Position numbers and translations under genes: made by a program. From NCBI GenBank assembly GCA_024704765.1, contig JAKMXF010000298.1, positions 434,001-498,000 on the forward strand: DNA of 64,000 nucleotides, written 5' to 3'. This stretch comes from Oopsacas minuta (Eukaryota > Animalia > Porifera). The stretch's first letter is position 1, and every line of letters starts with the position of its first letter. Below are positions 8,113 to 17,440 of this stretch, piece after piece. A model generated the notes under the pieces. It saw only the letters and a list, made by a program, of their open reading frames with translations, ran no database searches and was not told the origin of the DNA.

Positions 8113-11100
8113 TTAAGTAAAAGATTTACACATATCATCCAGAATATTAACTATATCCGGGAACCAAGGTCTGTATCTTGGATCTTGATTCCAACAATCT
8201 TGCAACAATGATACATAGTGAGTAGGACAGTTTGTAGGAACTTGTAGACGACCTCCTTTTAACACGTGTTCCATAACCTGTAATAAACAAAGAAATAATT
8301 AAATAAAGGAATGTTCTAACAACTTATAAACAAAAATAAACAAAGATCGCCTTTTTCGAATTTCACAAAAGAATTAGAAAAATTAGTGAATGAAAAATCT
8401 CAAAATAGAGCCTGTGCCGACTTAACTTTCACTAAATGACTTACAGTTAGGAAGTTCCCGGTCATACATATATCTGTGCGTATTGCTAAACTGAGGTAGG
8501 AGTAATCAGCTTACCTCAAAATCAAACTTTAATTCGACATAAGGCCACTCCCTAGTAGCGAGCTCCCATAGGATAACCCCATAAGAATATATGTCAACTT
8601 TTTGTCCATATACTGTAGCAGCTAGCTTGGGTTTCATTGATTCAGGTGCACACCAGCGTATAGACCCAGCACAGGTTGTGTTGTACTGCTCAGCTTGTCG
8701 ATGTAAGAGAGGAGCTAGGAGAAGGATTTACAGTAGAACCTCATTAATACGAAACGAACAGATCTTCAAAGTTCGTTCGTATTAACCAGAGTAATACCAG
8801 TGAATAAATATTATTGTAGGGACAAGATTTTGTGTAAATATTCGTTCGTTACATTAGTATTAACCAGTTCCAATGTATATATAAGGTAGATCTGGAAAAT
8901 GGATATAAATTTTGTGGGAATATTTCCCTGTAAATAATTTCGTAGGTCTAGGGTCGTGACTTACATAACTACACAACTCTGAATATTCCCGGGTTTGATA
9001 TATACGTGGTTAAAAAGCACGCAAATATTCTGAGATCGAATATATATAATATTTATGATATAAAATCTTACAATTTTCACTTGGCTCATTCGCCTGAGTA
9101 GCAGCCTCCAAGCTTGGCATATTGATGAGTGAGTTACTTATGACAGATACCATATAGTCAATATCTTTAATCATTTTAGCAACTCCAAAATCAGCGACTT
9201 TAAGTTTCCAACTGTGGTCTACTAGAAGGTTAGCAGTCTTCAGATCTCTGTGAATTACAGGTGGAGTCACCCCGTGTAGATACGTCATACCTCTGGCTGC
9301 GTCAAGGGCCTACAAGGAAATGAACCAGTTAATTCATTCAGCCATACAAATACCAGTAGATTGAAGGAAATAACTGGACTCTCGTTTAGATGTATATACT
9401 TCATCAGGGCCAGTTGTTATTTCAAAGTCTGAAATTGTACAAATATGGTATGCAATACTCACCATTATAATCCTCTTTCTCCAGGTCAAATCTATAGAAT
9501 GATCATCTAGGATTTCTCTAACAGATCCTCTGTGCATATACTCTGTTATAAGACAGAGGTTAGGTACCTCTGTACATACACCCATCAGAAGTACAATATT
9601 TGGATGTAACAGTTTGCTAAATATAGAAATTCCATGTAATCACACTATTATCACATCCTTTAAATTCCTGAATTCAATAACAATATCGATTATTTTGATT
9701 GTCTCGATATTGTTAAATTTGATATTTAAATATATTTTGGCATATTACACCAATTGACACATTATGGAGCTTATTAAAGCCCCAGACGAAAATGAGATAT
9801 TTACGTAACTTGAGCATAATGTCTGATTCAAGCAAAAGGGAAGTCTCATATCAAAAATGGTATAAACTCTAAACTCAAAGCTATCAACACAAACATTTCC
9901 AAAAGTAGTACAGCGATGCCAAGACTTGTAGTGCCAAAATACCCAACAACTTTCGTTCCAATTTAAATGAAAATCAAGCCTATCGAGCGACTGGATTGAT
10001 CCGATTAAGTTGTACGATGCTCGCCGTACCTGCACCACGGGTGTGCTGCCCCTGCGATATCAGTCGGTTCAACATAATTGGTGGTAAGTTAACCAATTTC
10101 ACATTAACCATATATAGATGTATAATACTTTGGGTTGGAGTGTTCCGATTAAGCGAGTTAACTATACATATCCAGATTCATGAATATACCTCATAATAGC
10201 TGCTTCTTGTTGGAACTCCTCCTTCTCTTCCTGAGAAAGTCCTGAAGAATGTACACGAATCTTCTTAACAGCCACGATTGAATTACGCCATTTTCCTTTG
10301 TACACCTCTCCGAAACTACCACAACCAACTCTACACACATACAATAATGAAAATACACTAATAGAAATACGTATATGATAATACTAACTGTCGCATAATC
10401 TTAATCTCATTAAAATCTATAATGAGGCTAGGAGGAACTCGTCTATTCTTTAATGTATCCACATAGCAGTTATGTTGCTCTTCTAGATGATCTCTAAGAT
10501 TTCTCAACTTGTGACGTGTTGATCTCTGCCAGCATTTGTACACTCCCAATGTGACAAAGAAAGATAAGACTATGCCTAATGAGCCTGCTGCAGTCAGCAC
10601 TATCCACCAGTGAACTAAATACATGCACAGCAGTTCATAAAAATATGAGAAATCTGAGATTAATGTAATTCTTGTTGAATACACAGTTGAAGTGTCATAT
10701 CGAATAAAATTCACAAGCTTCATTCGGTTGAAAGTTATATAGTAAACTATCATGTATTTATGTGCTAGAGAAAGTCTTAATAATGTCTACAGCCTCACAA
10801 TCACTAGATTGCTGCTAATGTTTAGAACTAATCTCAGGAAATATTGACAGACAGTTTTGGTTAGAATAATATAATAATCAAAATGAGTTAAGTAACATAG
10901 AACATAATAACCAGGCTTGCCGTGGGTATAGGAATCATTTTCTTGCTATGGGAAAACCAATGGGAATTCCGTCCTAAGCCAGGCGCCTTCTCTTGAGACG
11001 AAAAATTTGTTTTTGCTGTCGGAATGGGAATTCCCACAGAAATCCTGTGGTAATGGAATGGGAATGAAATTCAGCACCCACGGCAACCCTGTTAATAACT

Positions 11101-14100
11101 CACATTCACTACAGTCAAAGCCTCCAAACATAGGGTTACATTGACAAGTGTTTATCCGTGGAACACAAGGATACCCGTGACAGTCATTTGGACAACATGA
11201 TTCTTTCATTTGGATAGGACAAGCTGATAAAGTGCTGACGTCAGTATCTTCTATGCAGCTGTGTGTAATAACACAGTAGGTACATTTAGAATTAGTACGA
11301 CAGGTGCTACAATCACATGACAGGTGTTCACATGCTATATCTAAGTAAGGTACATATATTATATCATGAAATATGTTCACGTAAAGAGAAAGAAGTAGTG
11401 ATCAAGTAATCTGGTAAACGCTCGTTAATATCAATACAGGTGACGTCGAAATTCATACTCTTAAGTACGCTAGTATTGAAGGGACGATAATAGCTTAGTA
11501 GTTTGTATGAATTAACGAGAATATAATGTATGTGGAGTTCGTCTATTACTAGACTATTAGCAAGTCGCCTTTCGCATGCATTTCACTTGCTATTAGAGCA
11601 TTATTTCCAATACAAAATGGACTCTAAGTCCCTGAAAAATCTAGCTACTGTATTAAGCGGGTATCGCTAATAAGTGAACATCACTGTATAACTTTAGCGG
11701 CATCAGATAATATTATTCTTAAAACTCTATAAACCAAGAATACAAGTGAAATTTATATGTATAATCTGAAAAATGAGCTCCTCTAAAATGAAAATATCAA
11801 CCTCCCAAATAATGACATAGTCTCGATTGACATCTAAAAATGCCTGCCAAGTTGGCCAGTTTTCATAGTAAAAATTACTAAATATATATTTATCATAACA
11901 TTACCTATAAAATTAGCATTCCAAAAGTTCCCTTCATGCACCTGGTTAAGAGTAAAATTAATTCCATTATCATTGAGAGGTGTAGGTGTCCCCTCTGAAT
12001 AATAATATCTAAGTATTTCAGCAGGTAAGATTTGTGACGGACAATCGTGATCTTTCTCTGAAAAACTTAGCAAAACACTTCCATTCCAATAAAGATACGC
12101 TACATACCATGGAATTATCTTCCCATAAACTATATTGAGAGTTCCATTTTGTGTTTGATTGTAAGACCGTAGAAATGGAAAATCACCTTCTAATTTCAAA
12201 TAGTTGAAGTTGACAATCGAGTCAAACTTTATTAATTCAATATTCTTGATATGAAACAATCCGTGATTATCAATACTCATAGAACTCTGTGAATGTGGTA
12301 TATAGTACCCAGACATTGTGAGAAAGGCTTTCCTCTTAAGGAGAATAGCAGTGTTATATAGTCGGGCTGAAGGGTTCCAGGCTGGAGTACACACTGTGTT
12401 TATGTGACAATCCCAGTTAGAAGCCCCTGTTATAGTTACCGTCCTAGCAAGAGAGAAATAACCTCCGAACCAATCCAAACGTTCTATTTCTAAATGAATA
12501 TAACCATCAGATAAATTAAATAATCTCTTCAACAAACCGAAAATATAGTATGGCTACATACCACATACATTAATTTTATCCTGCAACTATGGAAATGGTT
12601 TGAAGTTAAGTCAGACATATCCTTAGATAAATGGTTCCCTTCCCTAGTCAATTTGTCCACCTGTGTGTCTTGGACAACTAGGAAAACGAATCAAACGAAA
12701 CTATGTAAACTGATGTTGAACTTAAAAATGTACATTGAATATTGTGTGGTTTATGCTTCTGTTAAACAGTGTTAACATATTAAGTAAAATAAAATAGCCA
12801 GTTACTTGTCCATACATCCAATGATTAGATTAAATTTCAGGGTGGGATAGTCTGAATTCAGCTGATTTGTTATTCTTAATAGTTTTCAGCTCAATAGATT
12901 TCGAAACTCGTTATTACCAGAAATTCAGTTTCTTTAAATCCTAATACAGTGAAACCTGAATAATCCAAAAATCTCGTCGGATTACGGCTGAATTTCACGA
13001 AAGACATCAGGATCAGAATGACATAAAACAAATTATGGCATTTTCTAGGGAATTAGTCGATCACCAATTTAATGACACGATCACGACCGTTCATTGAAAA
13101 ATAATCGGAGATAGTAATCTCGATCCTTTCGCCAAAAAGGATCTCGATATTCTTCACGATCATCATTTTAGCGATCACTTTTCTGAAATTTATAAGCATC
13201 TCCTATAGAGAGATGCTATTGAGTCCGTCCGTCGTTCTGGGCGATCATGCGAATCTATCAGTCAGATTGCCATGAAAGTTAGCGCATAAAGTTTGGGGTT
13301 TAGATTCGCAAATATTATCTGCCTAAAGGATCGAAAATATCGAACTTTCGGGAAAAATGATCTCGATCTTCCATGAGATCACTGTATTTAAAAAGATAGA
13401 CGATCATCCCTCGATCGTCAAAAATAGATCACGATACTAATACCTTATCATTTACTCACCTATTTCTTGCTCAGTGTTAATATACAGGACACTGAATTCA
13501 TGGTACATAGAGAGATAGTCAATATGAATTGTAGAGTTAACATTCTTAGGAATATCTTCTAAATCACTAATTGCAACTTCTGAGTCATTAATGTATATAG
13601 AATTAATCTGATTAGGAGAGGTAATGTATACACACACGTAGTATGTATCTATCTGTCTGTTCAGCTCGTATAGAGTCTGTATTGATATCGTATTGGTGAG
13701 ATTATTGAGGTAAAGATCTATCTAATTGAATAATATTTAAATAACGTACTACGTTGTTAAGGAATTTGTGGATGATTTACAAAGATTATATTATACGTAG
13801 GAATTATTTTTGAAACATTCCATGGATTCTAGCCTCTGTACTTTTCATCAGTCATTAGATAGTTTTTCCAAAGAAACTTGAGAAATGTGCCTAACAATTC
13901 AGGAATGCAGTGTATATTGCAAAAAGCTACCAAATTACCTTTCATTACTAATAAGTTCCCAGAGAAGAAATTTGGGAGAAAAAGTTCTGTTAATTGATCT
14001 TTTCCCGGATATGTATATATATATATATATATATATTAGAGGTTGCAAGCCGGCCCAAGCCTAGTTTGAGCTTCTGACTTATACTTTAGGGCACCGAATA

Positions 14101-15665
14101 AACCTGCCATTAACTTTGAAGTAATTTCGGTTAATTGCTTATATTAAATTAAAATCATCATTGAAATTCGTATTCATCTATTTTCATTCAATTTTAGAAT
14201 TATTCTAACTATGTTTTAGGTATGCGTCGTGCAGTGCTGGGCTCGGGCTGAAAAACTTAGCCTATTGCGACATCTAATATATGCAAGTGATCCCAAATTT
14301 TTCATAAATTGTACTAGAGTAGACGTACATTTAAATAAAGATACATACGCACTGTAAAAGTAAGACCCAATTATTCAGCTACTACAGTCAACTCCCAGTA
14401 TATCGAACTCCGCTTATATCAAATTAATTCTCGCTGTCCATTGAGCTTCGATATAACCGGAGTTGACTGTATTGATTATTCGTTAATATTTATGAGCGAT
14501 TAATAACCAACAAGCAATAGGTTAAACATATGTATAAGATGAAAAAGCTGGGTAATTAATACAAACTACACCATGCACAAAACTCACCATAGAGTGTTCA
14601 ACTTCATAACGTTTCTCCTTGAAAGTAACATTATACACAGAAATAGATATATCTTTCTTATTATCAGGATATAGCCCTTCTATATACACAATAGTAGAAT
14701 CTTGATCCGATACAAAATCAAATATACAATTTCTAAGATTAACTTTGGAATTATACAAAGCAAGACCCTTCCCAACTTCACATTGTAGAGTCTGGTTATC
14801 AGAGATGAAGGTAGAATTCTCAATATTCAAACATCTAACATTCTTAGTCATAATTAACCCACCAGCATTTCCACTTGCAAATCCATTTCTTAACACTAAT
14901 CCAACCAAGTCAACTATATTATATTCTTCGGGTTGAGCTAATCTAGTCATGAATCGACTATTTCCTCTTAAATCAAATACACATAAATCATTCTCACTAG
15001 TGACGTCACATCGAATTGAAATGTTTACCTTGTGAGTTAGATTTAAAGAATGTTGTATACCACTAAACATTCCAGGCTGTATACGAATTAAAATACCAGT
15101 TTTTCCATCGGGAACACGATTTATAGCACCTTGTAATGAGCTACAAGGATTATCATTGCTACAATCTTGAGTATCATTACCGTACTCTGCTATGTAGAAT
15201 GTGATGTCTAGATTGAGAGACCAGATTTATCGTTAATTCATAAAATATGATTATTCCTAAAAGTTTACATCTTAGTACCCGCAATGTATATAAAGATCCA
15301 TAATTTACTGAAAAAACGAGTTTTGACATATCCATGGTATTTTGATCCTGACGGAAATTTCAAGGTTAGGTCAAATACGCAAATGTATATATTTAAAAGG
15401 GCGGTGAAAGTGTTAAATAGTGGTCAGGCCCTACCATACAATTGAGTAGGCCCAGGCAAAATAGGGTCATGACATGGCCTGACTAGCCTGACCATTCGCG
15501 CTGTCCCCGATTTAAAACTGAATACAAAGAAATAAAGAACAGTTATAATGTGAATTCATTACCTGGAGTGAAAGTAGCATCACAGAATGAGTTAGCTGGT
15601 TCCGAGGAACAACCCTCTGAATTGTGTAATAAAAATAGTATTAAAAATATTGAATAAAAATACAT
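8113..15665 (-). CDS. Multi-exon single-pass receptor-like kinase: signal peptide, beta-helix/pectin-lyase-like ectodomain, PSI + EGF module, TM helix, TKL (Raf/MLK-like) kinase domain
   Basis: Phase-consistent GT-AG exons 15665-15563 ([18 protein letters not shown] signal peptide), 15207-~14580, 13607-13460, ~12550-11905, 11340-11104 (PSI/EGF cysteines), 10614-10389 ([26 protein letters not shown]), 10330-10190 ([13 protein letters not shown]), 9616-9463, 9309-9072 ([11 protein letters not shown]), 8714 or 8693-8515 ([15 protein letters not shown]), 8277-8113. Exons between ~14580 and ~12550 are not fully resolved. Confidence 0.85.
10912..11091. mobile_element. hAT-type MITE in kinase intron
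   Basis: TIR caggcttgccgtggg / cccacggcaaccctg; 8-bp TSD ataataac / ttaataac (7 of 8 match); related copy at 48317-48442. Confidence 0.75.
13191..13310 (+). mobile_element. HINE/DINE-1-like element 5' fragment
   Basis: Hairpin agcatctc-ctataga-gagatgct followed by gtccgtccgtc; shares ctcctatagRgagat and the GTCC repeat with 39985-40350. Confidence 0.45.
14385..14469. mobile_element. 85-bp pogo/Tigger-like (Tc1-mariner) MITE
   Basis: TIR cagtcaactcc / ggagttgactg flanked by TA on both sides. Confidence 0.75.
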
Positions 15666-16517
15666 ATCAGTTGTTAGAATCTGTCACCAGCCAGGAAATA
15701 AACATCGATAAAACTAGTCAACAATATTACAAAGATAGAACTAATCATGTAATAAAAGGGACGGAATTATGGTGTAAATAATTAGGTCACATATTCAAAA
15801 ATAGGAAAATAATACTCATTCGATAATCGACGAACTTTTTTCCTTGAGAGTTCGAACTAACACACGATGACTATTTCTTTCATTGAAACTTAGTCTGGCC
15901 ATGAGCTATATAGTCAAGAAAAAAATTATGGGAAAACGCTTTCTGGTGCCATGGTGATGACAAAATTGAAGTTGATAAAACCCTGGAGAAAGAGTGTATA
16001 ATAATAATCAGTATGACCAAAGATATTCCACGGTATTTTTAGTAAAGTTGATTTCTGTCATTTTGGCCAAACTTGACAAACTAGTGGACCTGAGTGTATT
16101 CATGATATAAAATTGTATAACTATTGTGGCCATATGCCAAGAAAGTTGAGAACCCAGGTATACAAGATTTATTGTTGGTATGAAATTATACTGTGTTCAT
16201 CGTAAATTTCCAGGACCGCTTGGCCTGCATGATGTGCGACGTCAAACAAACTTTAAATCATTATTAAATCGAAAATAAACGTCGTCTAAATAGCAACCCC
16301 AATTATATTCCACTCAATTATCTACATACAAAGGTAAGTATTCTCTAAATTCAATAATGGAAATGAAACTTAATATATCTCTAATATTATTGTAAAGTTA
16401 CTAATGAATCAAATGAAATGTTAAGAATGTAAAACTATCTAGAAATTAATAAGTGTGTACGGGGGTATTACAAATTAAAGGGTTCTAATATCAAATTTCA
16501 TTACGACCTACACGTAA

Positions 16518-17440
16518 CTATGTTGGAATTTGTAACAAAAGATTCTGATCATGACCACCGGGTAGATAGGCAACATTCTTTGAATGAGAAAGTTGTTTAG
16601 CTAAATCTTCAGCAGTTTCAAGTCTTCTCAACTCAATCAAACTGTCTCCAGCTGTGGTAAACGCATCTGCTAGGATCTGTGCAGCCTTGGCGTCTCCCTC
16701 AGAACTAATCACATTTGCTTGTTTAATAAATTCAGCTTTCTCCACTACGAATCGAGCCTTTTCAGCTTCCTGTTGCGCCACCTGCTTCTGTTCTACAGCA
16801 CTAGTGAATTCCCTTCCAAAGTTAAGATGTGTGATAGATATATCATCGAGTAATATACCAAAATAATCAGCTCGTAGTGATAACATGTCTCCAATACGCT
16901 GACTAACTAAATCTCTTTGAGTTAACAGTTCTGAAGCATCAAACTCTGCCACCACTGACTTCAAAACCTCTAAATTAGTATTGCAATAAATTAGAAATTC
17001 ATGCCATATTTCCTTAATAATAAATTTACAAAGTGTGTACCCGTAGTGTATATTTTACCTGTAGTAATGGAAGGCAAGACCTTATCAGCATATTCTGTCC
17101 CTAGATTCCTGTATATATTAACCAACTGAGTTTCTTGGGGATGGAACAATACTCTGAGGGTGATGTCTACTGTCTGTAGATCCTTGCTACCCGTTTCCAC
17201 ACGTATACTCCTTGGGGTGGAGCGGATACTATATATGTAAGGCTTCTGGATAAGCGGTATCAAAAAGTGAGTTCCCTCTGACGTGACATCCTTCAGGACT
17301 CCACGAAATCTGTCAAATATTATCCCTCGCTCACCTCCATCCACATTGTAAAGACACTGATTCACAGCTGCACCTACCGCAGCCATACCTAATCCCAACC
17401 AACCTAACTTGCTTACCAACCCATAAGCAGCTCTAGCCAT
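16518..17440 (-). CDS. PHB1: Prohibitin 1, 2 exons (17440-17059, 16969-16518), 277 aa
   Basis: [36 protein letters not shown]; spliced junction [18 protein letters not shown]; [24 protein letters not shown]; phase-1 GT-AG intron. Confidence 0.95.

Follow-up and report, generated by a model that had tools for sequence, protein, structure and literature searches.

A putative beta-helix receptor kinase of the TKL group encoded by a spliced gene of the sponge Oopsacas minuta

Gene structure and transcript contigs

The window analyzed here is a 64,000-nucleotide (nt) stretch of the Oopsacas minuta genome (contig JAKMXF010000298.1, positions 434,001–498,000 of the forward strand), and gene coordinates are given as positions within it. 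An 11-exon gene was assembled on its minus strand between 15665 and 8113, the coding sequence of which comprises 2931 nt, namely 976 codons and a stop. Reading of the open reading frames (ORFs) located the ATG at 15665 and the stop codon at 8115–8113, and removal of ten canonical GT–AG introns leaves the 2931-nt coding sequence open. A first-pass annotation of this DNA had placed one spliced receptor gene at 8113–15665, which proved exact at both ends, and all of the strings quoted there are present. The single gene with a signal peptide, a beta-helix start, a Cys-rich module, one transmembrane helix, and an intact kinase, arranged as a type I receptor, was likewise recovered. The 262-nt exon at 13721–13460 was absent from that annotation; it is conserved and required for the reading frame. 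The exons are listed below in the direction of transcription, with identities referring to orthologs at four other loci (L001–L004).

15563–15665, minus strand: exon 1, start codon and signal peptide (residues 1–34), with the hydrophobic core IFLILFLL and a G-C..NSFC motif conserved in L001–L004
14588–15207, minus strand: exon 2, predicted right-handed parallel beta-helix module with a DUF1565/Pel9A-like N-terminal cap (residues 36–241)
13460–13721, minus strand: exon 3, ectodomain exon of 87 residues, 49–72% identical in the four orthologs
11905–12489, minus strand: exon 4, beta-rich ectodomain exon of 195 residues, 48–69% identical in orthologs
11104–11340, minus strand: exon 5, Cys-rich module with 15 invariant Cys, PSI-like and then EGF-like halves
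10389–10614, minus strand: exon 6, transmembrane helix (residues 604–628), basic stop-transfer, juxtamembrane segment, and first kinase strand, 68–80% ortholog identity
10190–10330, minus strand: exon 7, Gly-loop GCGSFG, VAVK lysine, and alpha-C glutamate, covering positions 6–60 of Pfam PK_Tyr_Ser-Thr
9463–9616, minus strand: exon 8, kinase hinge and alpha-D/E, Pfam PK_Tyr_Ser-Thr positions 52–111
9072–9309, minus strand: exon 9, catalytic loop and start of an activation-segment insert, Pfam PK_Tyr_Ser-Thr positions 108–162, 82–91% ortholog identity including the insert
8515–8714, minus strand: exon 10, end of the activation segment (GSIRWCAPE) and alpha-F, Pfam PK_Tyr_Ser-Thr positions 156–208, 95–97% ortholog identity
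8113–8277, minus strand: exon 11, end of the kinase C-lobe (DPRYRP) and stop, Pfam PK_Tyr_Ser-Thr positions 212–258, found in L003 and L004

All database searches were run exon by exon rather than with the joined spliced protein as a query. When the first large ectodomain exon was used in a word search, three exon-sized ORFs of 58–61% identity were obtained, and an exhaustive profile search with exon 2 contributed two further cluster representatives. When the window was compared with L001–L004 by tblastx and tblastn, eleven conserved blocks were obtained, between which the sequence is unconserved. All ten junctions carry GT–AG, with codon position and phase unchanged among all loci, including the window, that hold both of the exons concerned. 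L003 is the most compact locus, in which the eleven exons occupy approximately 3.6 kb with introns of 57–107 nt, and its exon 1 likewise encodes a signal peptide with the G-C...NSFC motif. The gene model is far beyond chance, since the exons are conserved in four other loci and the introns are not, and since the exons are spliced as modelled in the RNA-like contigs described next.

Four sequencing runs (X1–X4) were placed on window positions 9900–15700, excepting a TA-rich simple repeat at 14003–14044. The depth of X4 was 500–970 in exon bins versus 0–58 in intron bins; the other three runs exhibited a flat depth without joints. The contigs of X4 contained the joints 15563/15207, 14588/13721, 13460/12489, 11905/11340, 11104/10614, and 10389/10330, which correspond exactly to introns 1–6, and all six have CT..AC ends that read GT..AG on the gene strand. 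One contig spans exactly 13460–13721, namely exon 3, with joints on both sides. Furthermore, a loose end of 28 letters at 10190 is an exact copy of 9589–9616, the start of exon 8, which identifies intron 7. The six joints together with this loose end confirm introns 1–7.

The joint 11104/10614 connects the last ectodomain exon to the exon for the transmembrane helix and the kinase start, and its contig depth of 785 is similar to that of the neighbouring joints. This indicates that the ectodomain and the transmembrane/kinase exons belong to one transcript, on evidence that consists of assembled contigs rather than reads and includes no single record spanning the whole mRNA. Separate transcripts for the two halves, which the first-pass annotation had named as a finding that would speak against its proposal, are thus at odds with the X4 contigs. 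The gene model and the receptor-kinase architecture are held with high confidence. A minor joint, 12187/11340, was also detected, which uses a GT donor inside exon 4 and removes 94 codons in frame (window 11905–12187, minus strand), all of them in the unassigned portion of the ectodomain; its depth is 72 versus 495 for the main joint. Two intronic segments, 14362–14555 and 11452–11645, had contig depths 4–30 times those of their surroundings in the DNA-like runs X1–X3 and are probably dispersed repeats. Within intron 2, the contigs of X2, X3, and X4 hold 36 other letters at 14176–14181, representing an indel or an allelic difference from the assembly.

The ectodomain

The ectodomain, which follows a predicted cleavable signal peptide, comprises approximately 585 residues, and 13 N-glycosylation sequons are located in exons 1–5. 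Exon 2 contains FYIAEYGND at residues 38–46, and alignment showed that it opens with the cap motif Y-x-x-x-x-G-x-D-x-x-x-C-x-x-x-x-P-C-x-T/S-I/L-Q-x-A, which is typical of DUF1565/Pel9A-like beta-helices. Protein language-model look-alikes of this exon were Beta_helix, Chlam_PMP, and DUF1565 at 0.96. A profile built from four orthologs gave 135 matches, composed of the two orthologous clusters and 133 proteins at E values from 1e-14 to 1e-3. When 12 of the higher-ranked matches were scanned with Pfam, eight exhibited DUF1565, Beta_helix, or NosD beside Big_1, PKD, dockerin, and similar domains; three (P0010, P0013, and P0008) had only domains of the Big_1/PKD/dockerin type, and one gave no match. 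The identity of exon 2 is 18–24% to these distant beta-helix relatives and 8–18% to any enzyme. The DUF1565 cut-off of Pfam (20.3 bits) was not reached, as three orthologs scored 13.8–15.3 bits and the window exon gave no match, and Pel9A-like_beta_helix (PF22842) was represented by one weak precomputed match. None of the ectodomain segments gave a Pfam match, or an enzyme family, above threshold.

An AF2 model of exon 2, for which the alignment included the distant beta-helix homologues, exhibited a predicted local distance difference test score (pLDDT) of 78 and a predicted template-modelling score (pTM) of 0.81. Its VIA structure comparison gave Z values of 16.3–9.8, the highest at a root-mean-square deviation of 3.0 over 191 residues, and all of the top 50 matches were right-handed beta-helices. 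A Foldseek probability of 1.0 was obtained, and Atlas TM values of 0.68–0.79 were evaluated, the best of which was to DUF1565 clusters. As modelled, exon 2 is a right-handed parallel beta-helix at the level of fold and distant homology rather than of family membership. The beta-helix domain that the first-pass annotation had proposed is thereby demonstrated for exon 2, a third of the ectodomain; exons 3 and 4 have no detectable family.

Profile searches with exon 4 gave no Pfam or PDB match, and comparison of its profile with the exon-2 beta-helix profile by hhalign detected no similarity. The Atlas look-alikes of exon 4, namely pertactin, rOmpB, and G8 at 0.85 or below, are regarded as leads only. 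An AF2 model of this exon from five orthologs was discarded at pLDDT 37.

The PSI and EGF modules that had been predicted next are visible in the Cys patterns of exon 5, for which no significant profile match was obtained. The alignment of this exon contains 15 Cys that are invariant across five species. Eight invariant Cys in its first half have the PSI-like spacing CxxC...CxYC, and PSI was not matched in Pfam at E ≤ 10 nor exon 5 in the PDB profiles. The second half holds the EGF pattern C-x-C-x5-G-x2-C at residues 589–600, with weak, insignificant matches to a mastigoneme EGF repeat (E 0.16) and EGF_alliinase (E 0.2).

The membrane anchor and the kinase

The transmembrane helix (HWWIV...GVY, residues 604–628) is an uncharged segment of 25 residues followed by a basic stop-transfer of K, R, and H. 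Beyond the latter, exon 6 encodes approximately 45 juxtamembrane residues and the first kinase strand, so that the kinase is physically tied to the transmembrane helix by starting within the same exon. Five loci share the features of a type I single-pass protein, namely a signal peptide, one transmembrane helix, a basic cytoplasmic side, and sequons outside, as read from the sequences rather than by a predictor. The basic residues C-terminal to the helix place the kinase in the cytoplasm.

Five exons tile positions 6–258 of Pfam PK_Tyr_Ser-Thr in order, each scoring above the 23.1-bit cut-off. The motifs GCGSFG (680–685), VAVKK (697–701), QQEAAIM (718–724), HRDLKTAN (796–803), DFG (816–818), CAPE (877–880), and DPRYRP (954–959, with the subdomain XI arginine) were located in the protein. 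These show a complete eukaryotic protein kinase domain in which every catalytic residue is present, and which is predicted to be active. The activation segment from DFG to APE is 65 residues long (window 9072–9184 and 8650–8714, minus strand), compared with the usual 25–30 or so. The insert of approximately 35 residues is rich in Ser, Thr, and acidic residues and is 82–91% conserved across five species, and this conservation suggests that it may be regulatory. The best PDB matches of the individual kinase exons were as follows.

Exon 7: TNNI3K
Exon 8: kinase-homology domain of the ANP receptor, CTR1, MLK1, and DDR1
Exon 9: CTR1, CERK1, RIPK2, plant receptor-like kinases (RLKs; FERONIA, SymRK, and BRI1), and TNNI3K
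Exon 10: DLK, CTR1, MLK4, TAK1, TNNI3K, MLK1, RAF, ILK, and ZAK
Exon 11: insulin receptor, ZAK, Eph receptors, and MLK1

CTR1 was the most consistent high scorer across these exons, and receptors of the TGF-beta family (STKR) appeared in none of the five lists of PDB matches. A GS motif of the SGSGSG type is not present in the juxtamembrane segment. The TK (tyrosine kinase) group is defined by a catalytic loop of the form HRDLAARN or HRDLRAAN; the loop found here, HRDLKTAN, is of the Ser/Thr type HRDLKxxN. The TKL-dominated matches and this loop support assignment to the TKL Ser/Thr kinases, possibly with dual specificity, of the Raf-like/MLK kind, setting the domain apart from STKR and from kinases with a TK-type loop. 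This agrees with the Raf/MLK-like kinase of the first-pass annotation.

The kinases most similar to this domain are the Raf-like and MLK-type MAP3Ks (CTR1, MLK1/4, DLK, TAK1, ZAK, TNNI3K, and RAF), which provided the best or near-best PDB matches for exons 7, 9, and 10 and were among the top for exons 8 and 11. The HRDLKxxN loop is common to both, and the P+1-region motif of the sponge kinase resembles those of RAF and MLK. The MAP3Ks are cytoplasmic, whereas the sponge kinase is anchored to the membrane behind a large ectodomain and additionally carries the 35-residue insert. TGF-beta, activin, and BMP receptors share with it the single-pass type I topology and a cytoplasmic Ser/Thr kinase of the TKL group. 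Their ectodomain is, however, a small three-finger domain rather than approximately 585 residues with a beta-helix, and the sponge receptor has neither the GS motif nor STKR kinase matches.

Similar architectures are known outside the animals. Plant RLK/Pelle proteins (CERK1, FERONIA, WAKs, SymRK, and BRI1) follow a comparable plan, in which an ectodomain that senses glycans or the cell wall is linked through one transmembrane helix to a TKL-related Ser/Thr kinase; however, their ectodomain folds are LysM, malectin-like, and LRR, and they scored highly for exon 9 only. The resemblance is most simply taken as convergent. The GDT and DRK kinases of Dictyostelium and the transmembrane kinases of Entamoeba likewise have a signal peptide, an ectodomain, a single transmembrane helix, and a non-STKR TKL-type kinase (PMC1420674; PMC2880585). 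Their ectodomains, as described, are lineage-specific and unrelated to that of the sponge. The N-terminal cap motif and the fold of exon 2 are shared with prokaryotic DUF1565/Pel9A-like surface proteins and carbohydrate-active enzymes, which differ by their low identity of 18–24%; the sponge module, in addition, belongs to an animal gene with introns and is joined to a kinase.

Distribution, origin, and proposed function

A search of 1.84 billion representatives with the exon-2 profile gave two clusters as the only close matches, both of which are orthologous exon ORFs. A kinase motif was found in none of the 135 profile matches, and no other fusion of a beta-helix with a kinase was found among them. 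Word searches with exons 2, 4, and 9, together with the exhaustive exon-2 search, detected orthologs in approximately 7 ENA or Logan assemblies only, at identities of 48–66% for the ectodomain and 82–90% for kinase exon 9. As far as the searched data go, the gene appears to be confined to a few (glass-)sponge assemblies that are related to each other, and no description of a beta-helix receptor kinase was found in the literature searched. The next-nearest matches of the kinase exons (L005–L007) are another TKL-like kinase anchored by a transmembrane helix; its ectodomain is unrelated, its introns lie at other positions, and it carries a C-terminal poly-Asn tail. In these loci (L005, 6394–8958; L006, the same gene; L007, 6938–8318), a single exon encodes the N-glycosylated ectodomain, the transmembrane helix, and a GSGSFG loop, and over HRD–DFG the catalytic exon shares 65% identity with that of the window. 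They lie on low-coverage contigs, adjoining a Roco-type gene (COR-B and kinase).

Selection was evaluated on the closest pair, L001 and L002 (dS 0.2–0.5); against the other loci, the window is saturated at synonymous sites. The ratio dN/dS was 0.23 for ectodomain exons 2–4, 0.14 for the Cys-rich exon, 0.05 for the exon of the transmembrane helix and juxtamembrane segment, and 0.10 for kinase exons 7–10. Between the window and the other loci, non-synonymous differences per site amounted to 0.20 for the ectodomain and 0.06 for the kinase. This indicates purifying selection on every part, with the ectodomain evolving fastest.

We consider it probable that a single 11-exon gene for a 976-residue type I membrane beta-helix receptor kinase accounts for the locus as a whole, and most likely that it originated in the sponge group when a beta-helix module was joined to a TKL kinase. 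A lineage-restricted receptor Ser/Thr kinase formed by such joining is the most economical reading. The architecture is supported and transcript-backed, and the proposals on evolution and ligand are hypotheses.

In the proposed mechanism, an extracellular ligand would bind to the beta-helix region of the ectodomain, and this binding would cluster or re-orient the receptor molecules. The kinases would then trans-phosphorylate each other on Ser/Thr, possibly also on Tyr, within the long activation segment, and the active kinase would phosphorylate cytoplasmic targets, perhaps in the manner of MAP3K-like TKLs, which feed a MAPK-type cascade. The balance for and against this course of activation is even. 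For the ligand, a polysaccharide or glycoconjugate is the first candidate, since the beta-helix fold usually binds or cuts such molecules, and this proposal is held with low confidence. The combined view, that glass sponges have a class of non-STKR receptor Ser/Thr kinases in which a polysaccharide-recognising beta-helix drives a Raf/MLK-like kinase at the membrane, is rather doubtful. If true, it would be a functional analogue of the plant receptor kinases that sense wall or chitin, for example for microbial or matrix glycans, and represent either a separate innovation or a holdover from pre-metazoan TKL receptors.

Several points weigh against the receptor-kinase explanation or parts of it. 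X4 is not on record as RNA, nor are the other runs, and we infer its RNA nature from the exon-peaked depth and the spliced contigs. Introns 8–10 lie outside 9900–15700 and draw their support from conservation. In the 20 kb examined of L001 and L002, exon 11 was not found; it probably lies beyond the examined flank there. Exons 3 and 4, approximately 280 residues, are conserved and beta-rich with no assignable fold, and exon 5 is putatively PSI/EGF-like by its Cys pattern. The subgroup within TKL is not settled by the exon matches, as exon 8 scored best to the ANP-receptor domain and exon 11 to the insulin and Eph receptors. The ligand class is suggested by the modelled fold of one third of the ectodomain. 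Finally, exon-sized word queries see only short proteins and the exhaustive search covered the ectodomain, so that full-length relatives of the kinase half may be missed.

Alternatively, the receptor could recognise a protein or cell-surface ligand rather than free glycans, in adhesion, self/non-self discrimination, or symbiont recognition, and the beta-helix would be a rigid display scaffold. PSI/EGF-like stalks are typical of protein-binding receptors and accord with this, as does the fast evolution of the ectodomain (0.20 against 0.06 in the kinase, at a dN/dS of 0.23). Positive selection, paired receptors, and tandem paralogues, however, were not seen at the locus, which is single-copy and syntenic in all of the loci, and a protein ligand is considered unlikely.

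With regard to origin, the first-pass annotation had offered an old horizontal acquisition or a pre-metazoan receptor class retained in this lineage. Transfer of the beta-helix module from a prokaryote, followed by its fusion to a resident TKL kinase, agrees with the non-orthologous relatives, all of which have prokaryote-type domain sets (DUF1565, Beta_helix, NosD, Big_1, and dockerin) or a prokaryotic label (Bacteria/Archaea clusters of the Atlas). Such a ranking is expected anyway, because the databases are dominated by prokaryotic beta-helices. The identity to the relatives is, moreover, only 18–24%, and no specific donor clade emerged. Spliceosomal introns interrupt and flank the module, which also contains N-glycosylation sequons. 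This origin is quite unlikely. The narrow distribution of the ectodomain fits a lineage-specific invention at least as well as horizontal transfer or pre-metazoan retention.

A membrane-tethered enzyme, such as a polysaccharide lyase, hydrolase, or esterase that the kinase regulates or whose matrix turnover it reports, is improbable as well. By structure, exon 2 is closest to glycoside hydrolases, to lyases of pectate, alginate, and rhamnogalacturonan, to pectin methylesterases, and to depolymerase tailspikes of phages, and the beta-helix-bearing surface hyaluronidases CEMIP and TMEM2 provide a loose parallel. The identity to enzymes is nonetheless only 8–18%, catalytic residues were not mapped onto the module, and no enzyme family appeared at the Pfam threshold. 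Adhesins without enzymatic activity, including PfbA, SRRP, pertactin-like proteins, and Pmp, commonly have this fold too.

Equally improbable is a relic of pre-metazoan TKL receptor kinases, similar to GDT and DRK, that was retained only in the sponge lineage. Dictyostelium has nine TKL kinases with a classic receptor architecture, and the STKR family is the only kind of TKL receptor described for metazoans (PMC1420674); L005–L007 also encode anchored TKL-like kinases with another ectodomain and a poly-Asn tail. The ectodomain, however, was found only in closely related assemblies, and the L005 gene differs in its intron positions and has an unrelated ectodomain. Independent fusion of transmembrane helices or ectodomains to kinases is frequent in holozoans: choanoflagellate GPCR-TKL/K fusions and sponge GPCR-kinase fusions were described in a 2025 study, which argued that such fusions arose repeatedly (PMC12716839).

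Lastly, two adjoining genes, one for a secreted beta-helix/EGF protein (exons 1–5) and the other for a membrane-anchored kinase (exons 6–11), would fit the different rates (ectodomain 36–69% versus kinase 82–97% identity), an in-frame ATG that precedes exon 6 of the window by a few codons, and the lack of one long read across the whole mRNA, but this is highly improbable in view of the joint from 11104 to 10614 at depth 785, near that of its neighbours, the phase 1 and strong donors of the exon 5/6 junction in five loci with a gap of only 57 nt in L003, the conservation of exon 6 that begins exactly at the acceptor, and the absence of a stop in exon 5 at its donor.

Metazoan receptor kinases are placed in the TK group or, among the TKL kinases, in the STKR family (PMC1420674). 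The beta-helix receptor kinase gene is a well-supported exception to this rule: spliced, expressed as far as X4 is RNA, conserved, and under purifying selection. It implies that early-branching animals also wired MAP3K-like TKL kinases directly to the cell surface, here with an outer part of a kind otherwise characteristic of carbohydrate-active proteins from microbes. This significance is tempered by the lineage-specific receptor architectures for which sponges and their relatives are known. The gene nevertheless provides a concrete candidate for a sponge sensor of glycans or microbes and an example of domain joining as a source of receptor kinase classes, and the conserved activation-segment insert of 35 residues offers a handle for studying regulation.

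The neighbourhood of the gene is conserved as well. Directly upstream on the same strand, the window contains a two-exon prohibitin (Band_7) gene at 16518–17440. Prohibitin is likewise located upstream in L001–L004, with the kinase exons downstream, and the order DNAJC9, Ank protein, prohibitin, and receptor kinase is kept in L001–L003; in L004, only prohibitin was seen upstream. Further upstream in L003, a lysyl oxidase ORF is followed by NAT10-type domains. On the other side, a gene with a caspase domain (Peptidase_C14) follows exon 10 on the same strand in L001, L002, and L004, while intron 10 of the window is 237 nt long without such an insertion. In L004, the Peptidase_C14 ORF (16250–17137) lies inside intron 10, between exon 10 (15377–15574) and exon 11 (17138–17296). 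In L001 (19265–20639) and L002 (17555–20603), it is a giant caspase gene with products of at least 2323 and at least 1271 residues, respectively, which contains many tandem repeats of 87 nt (29 residues).

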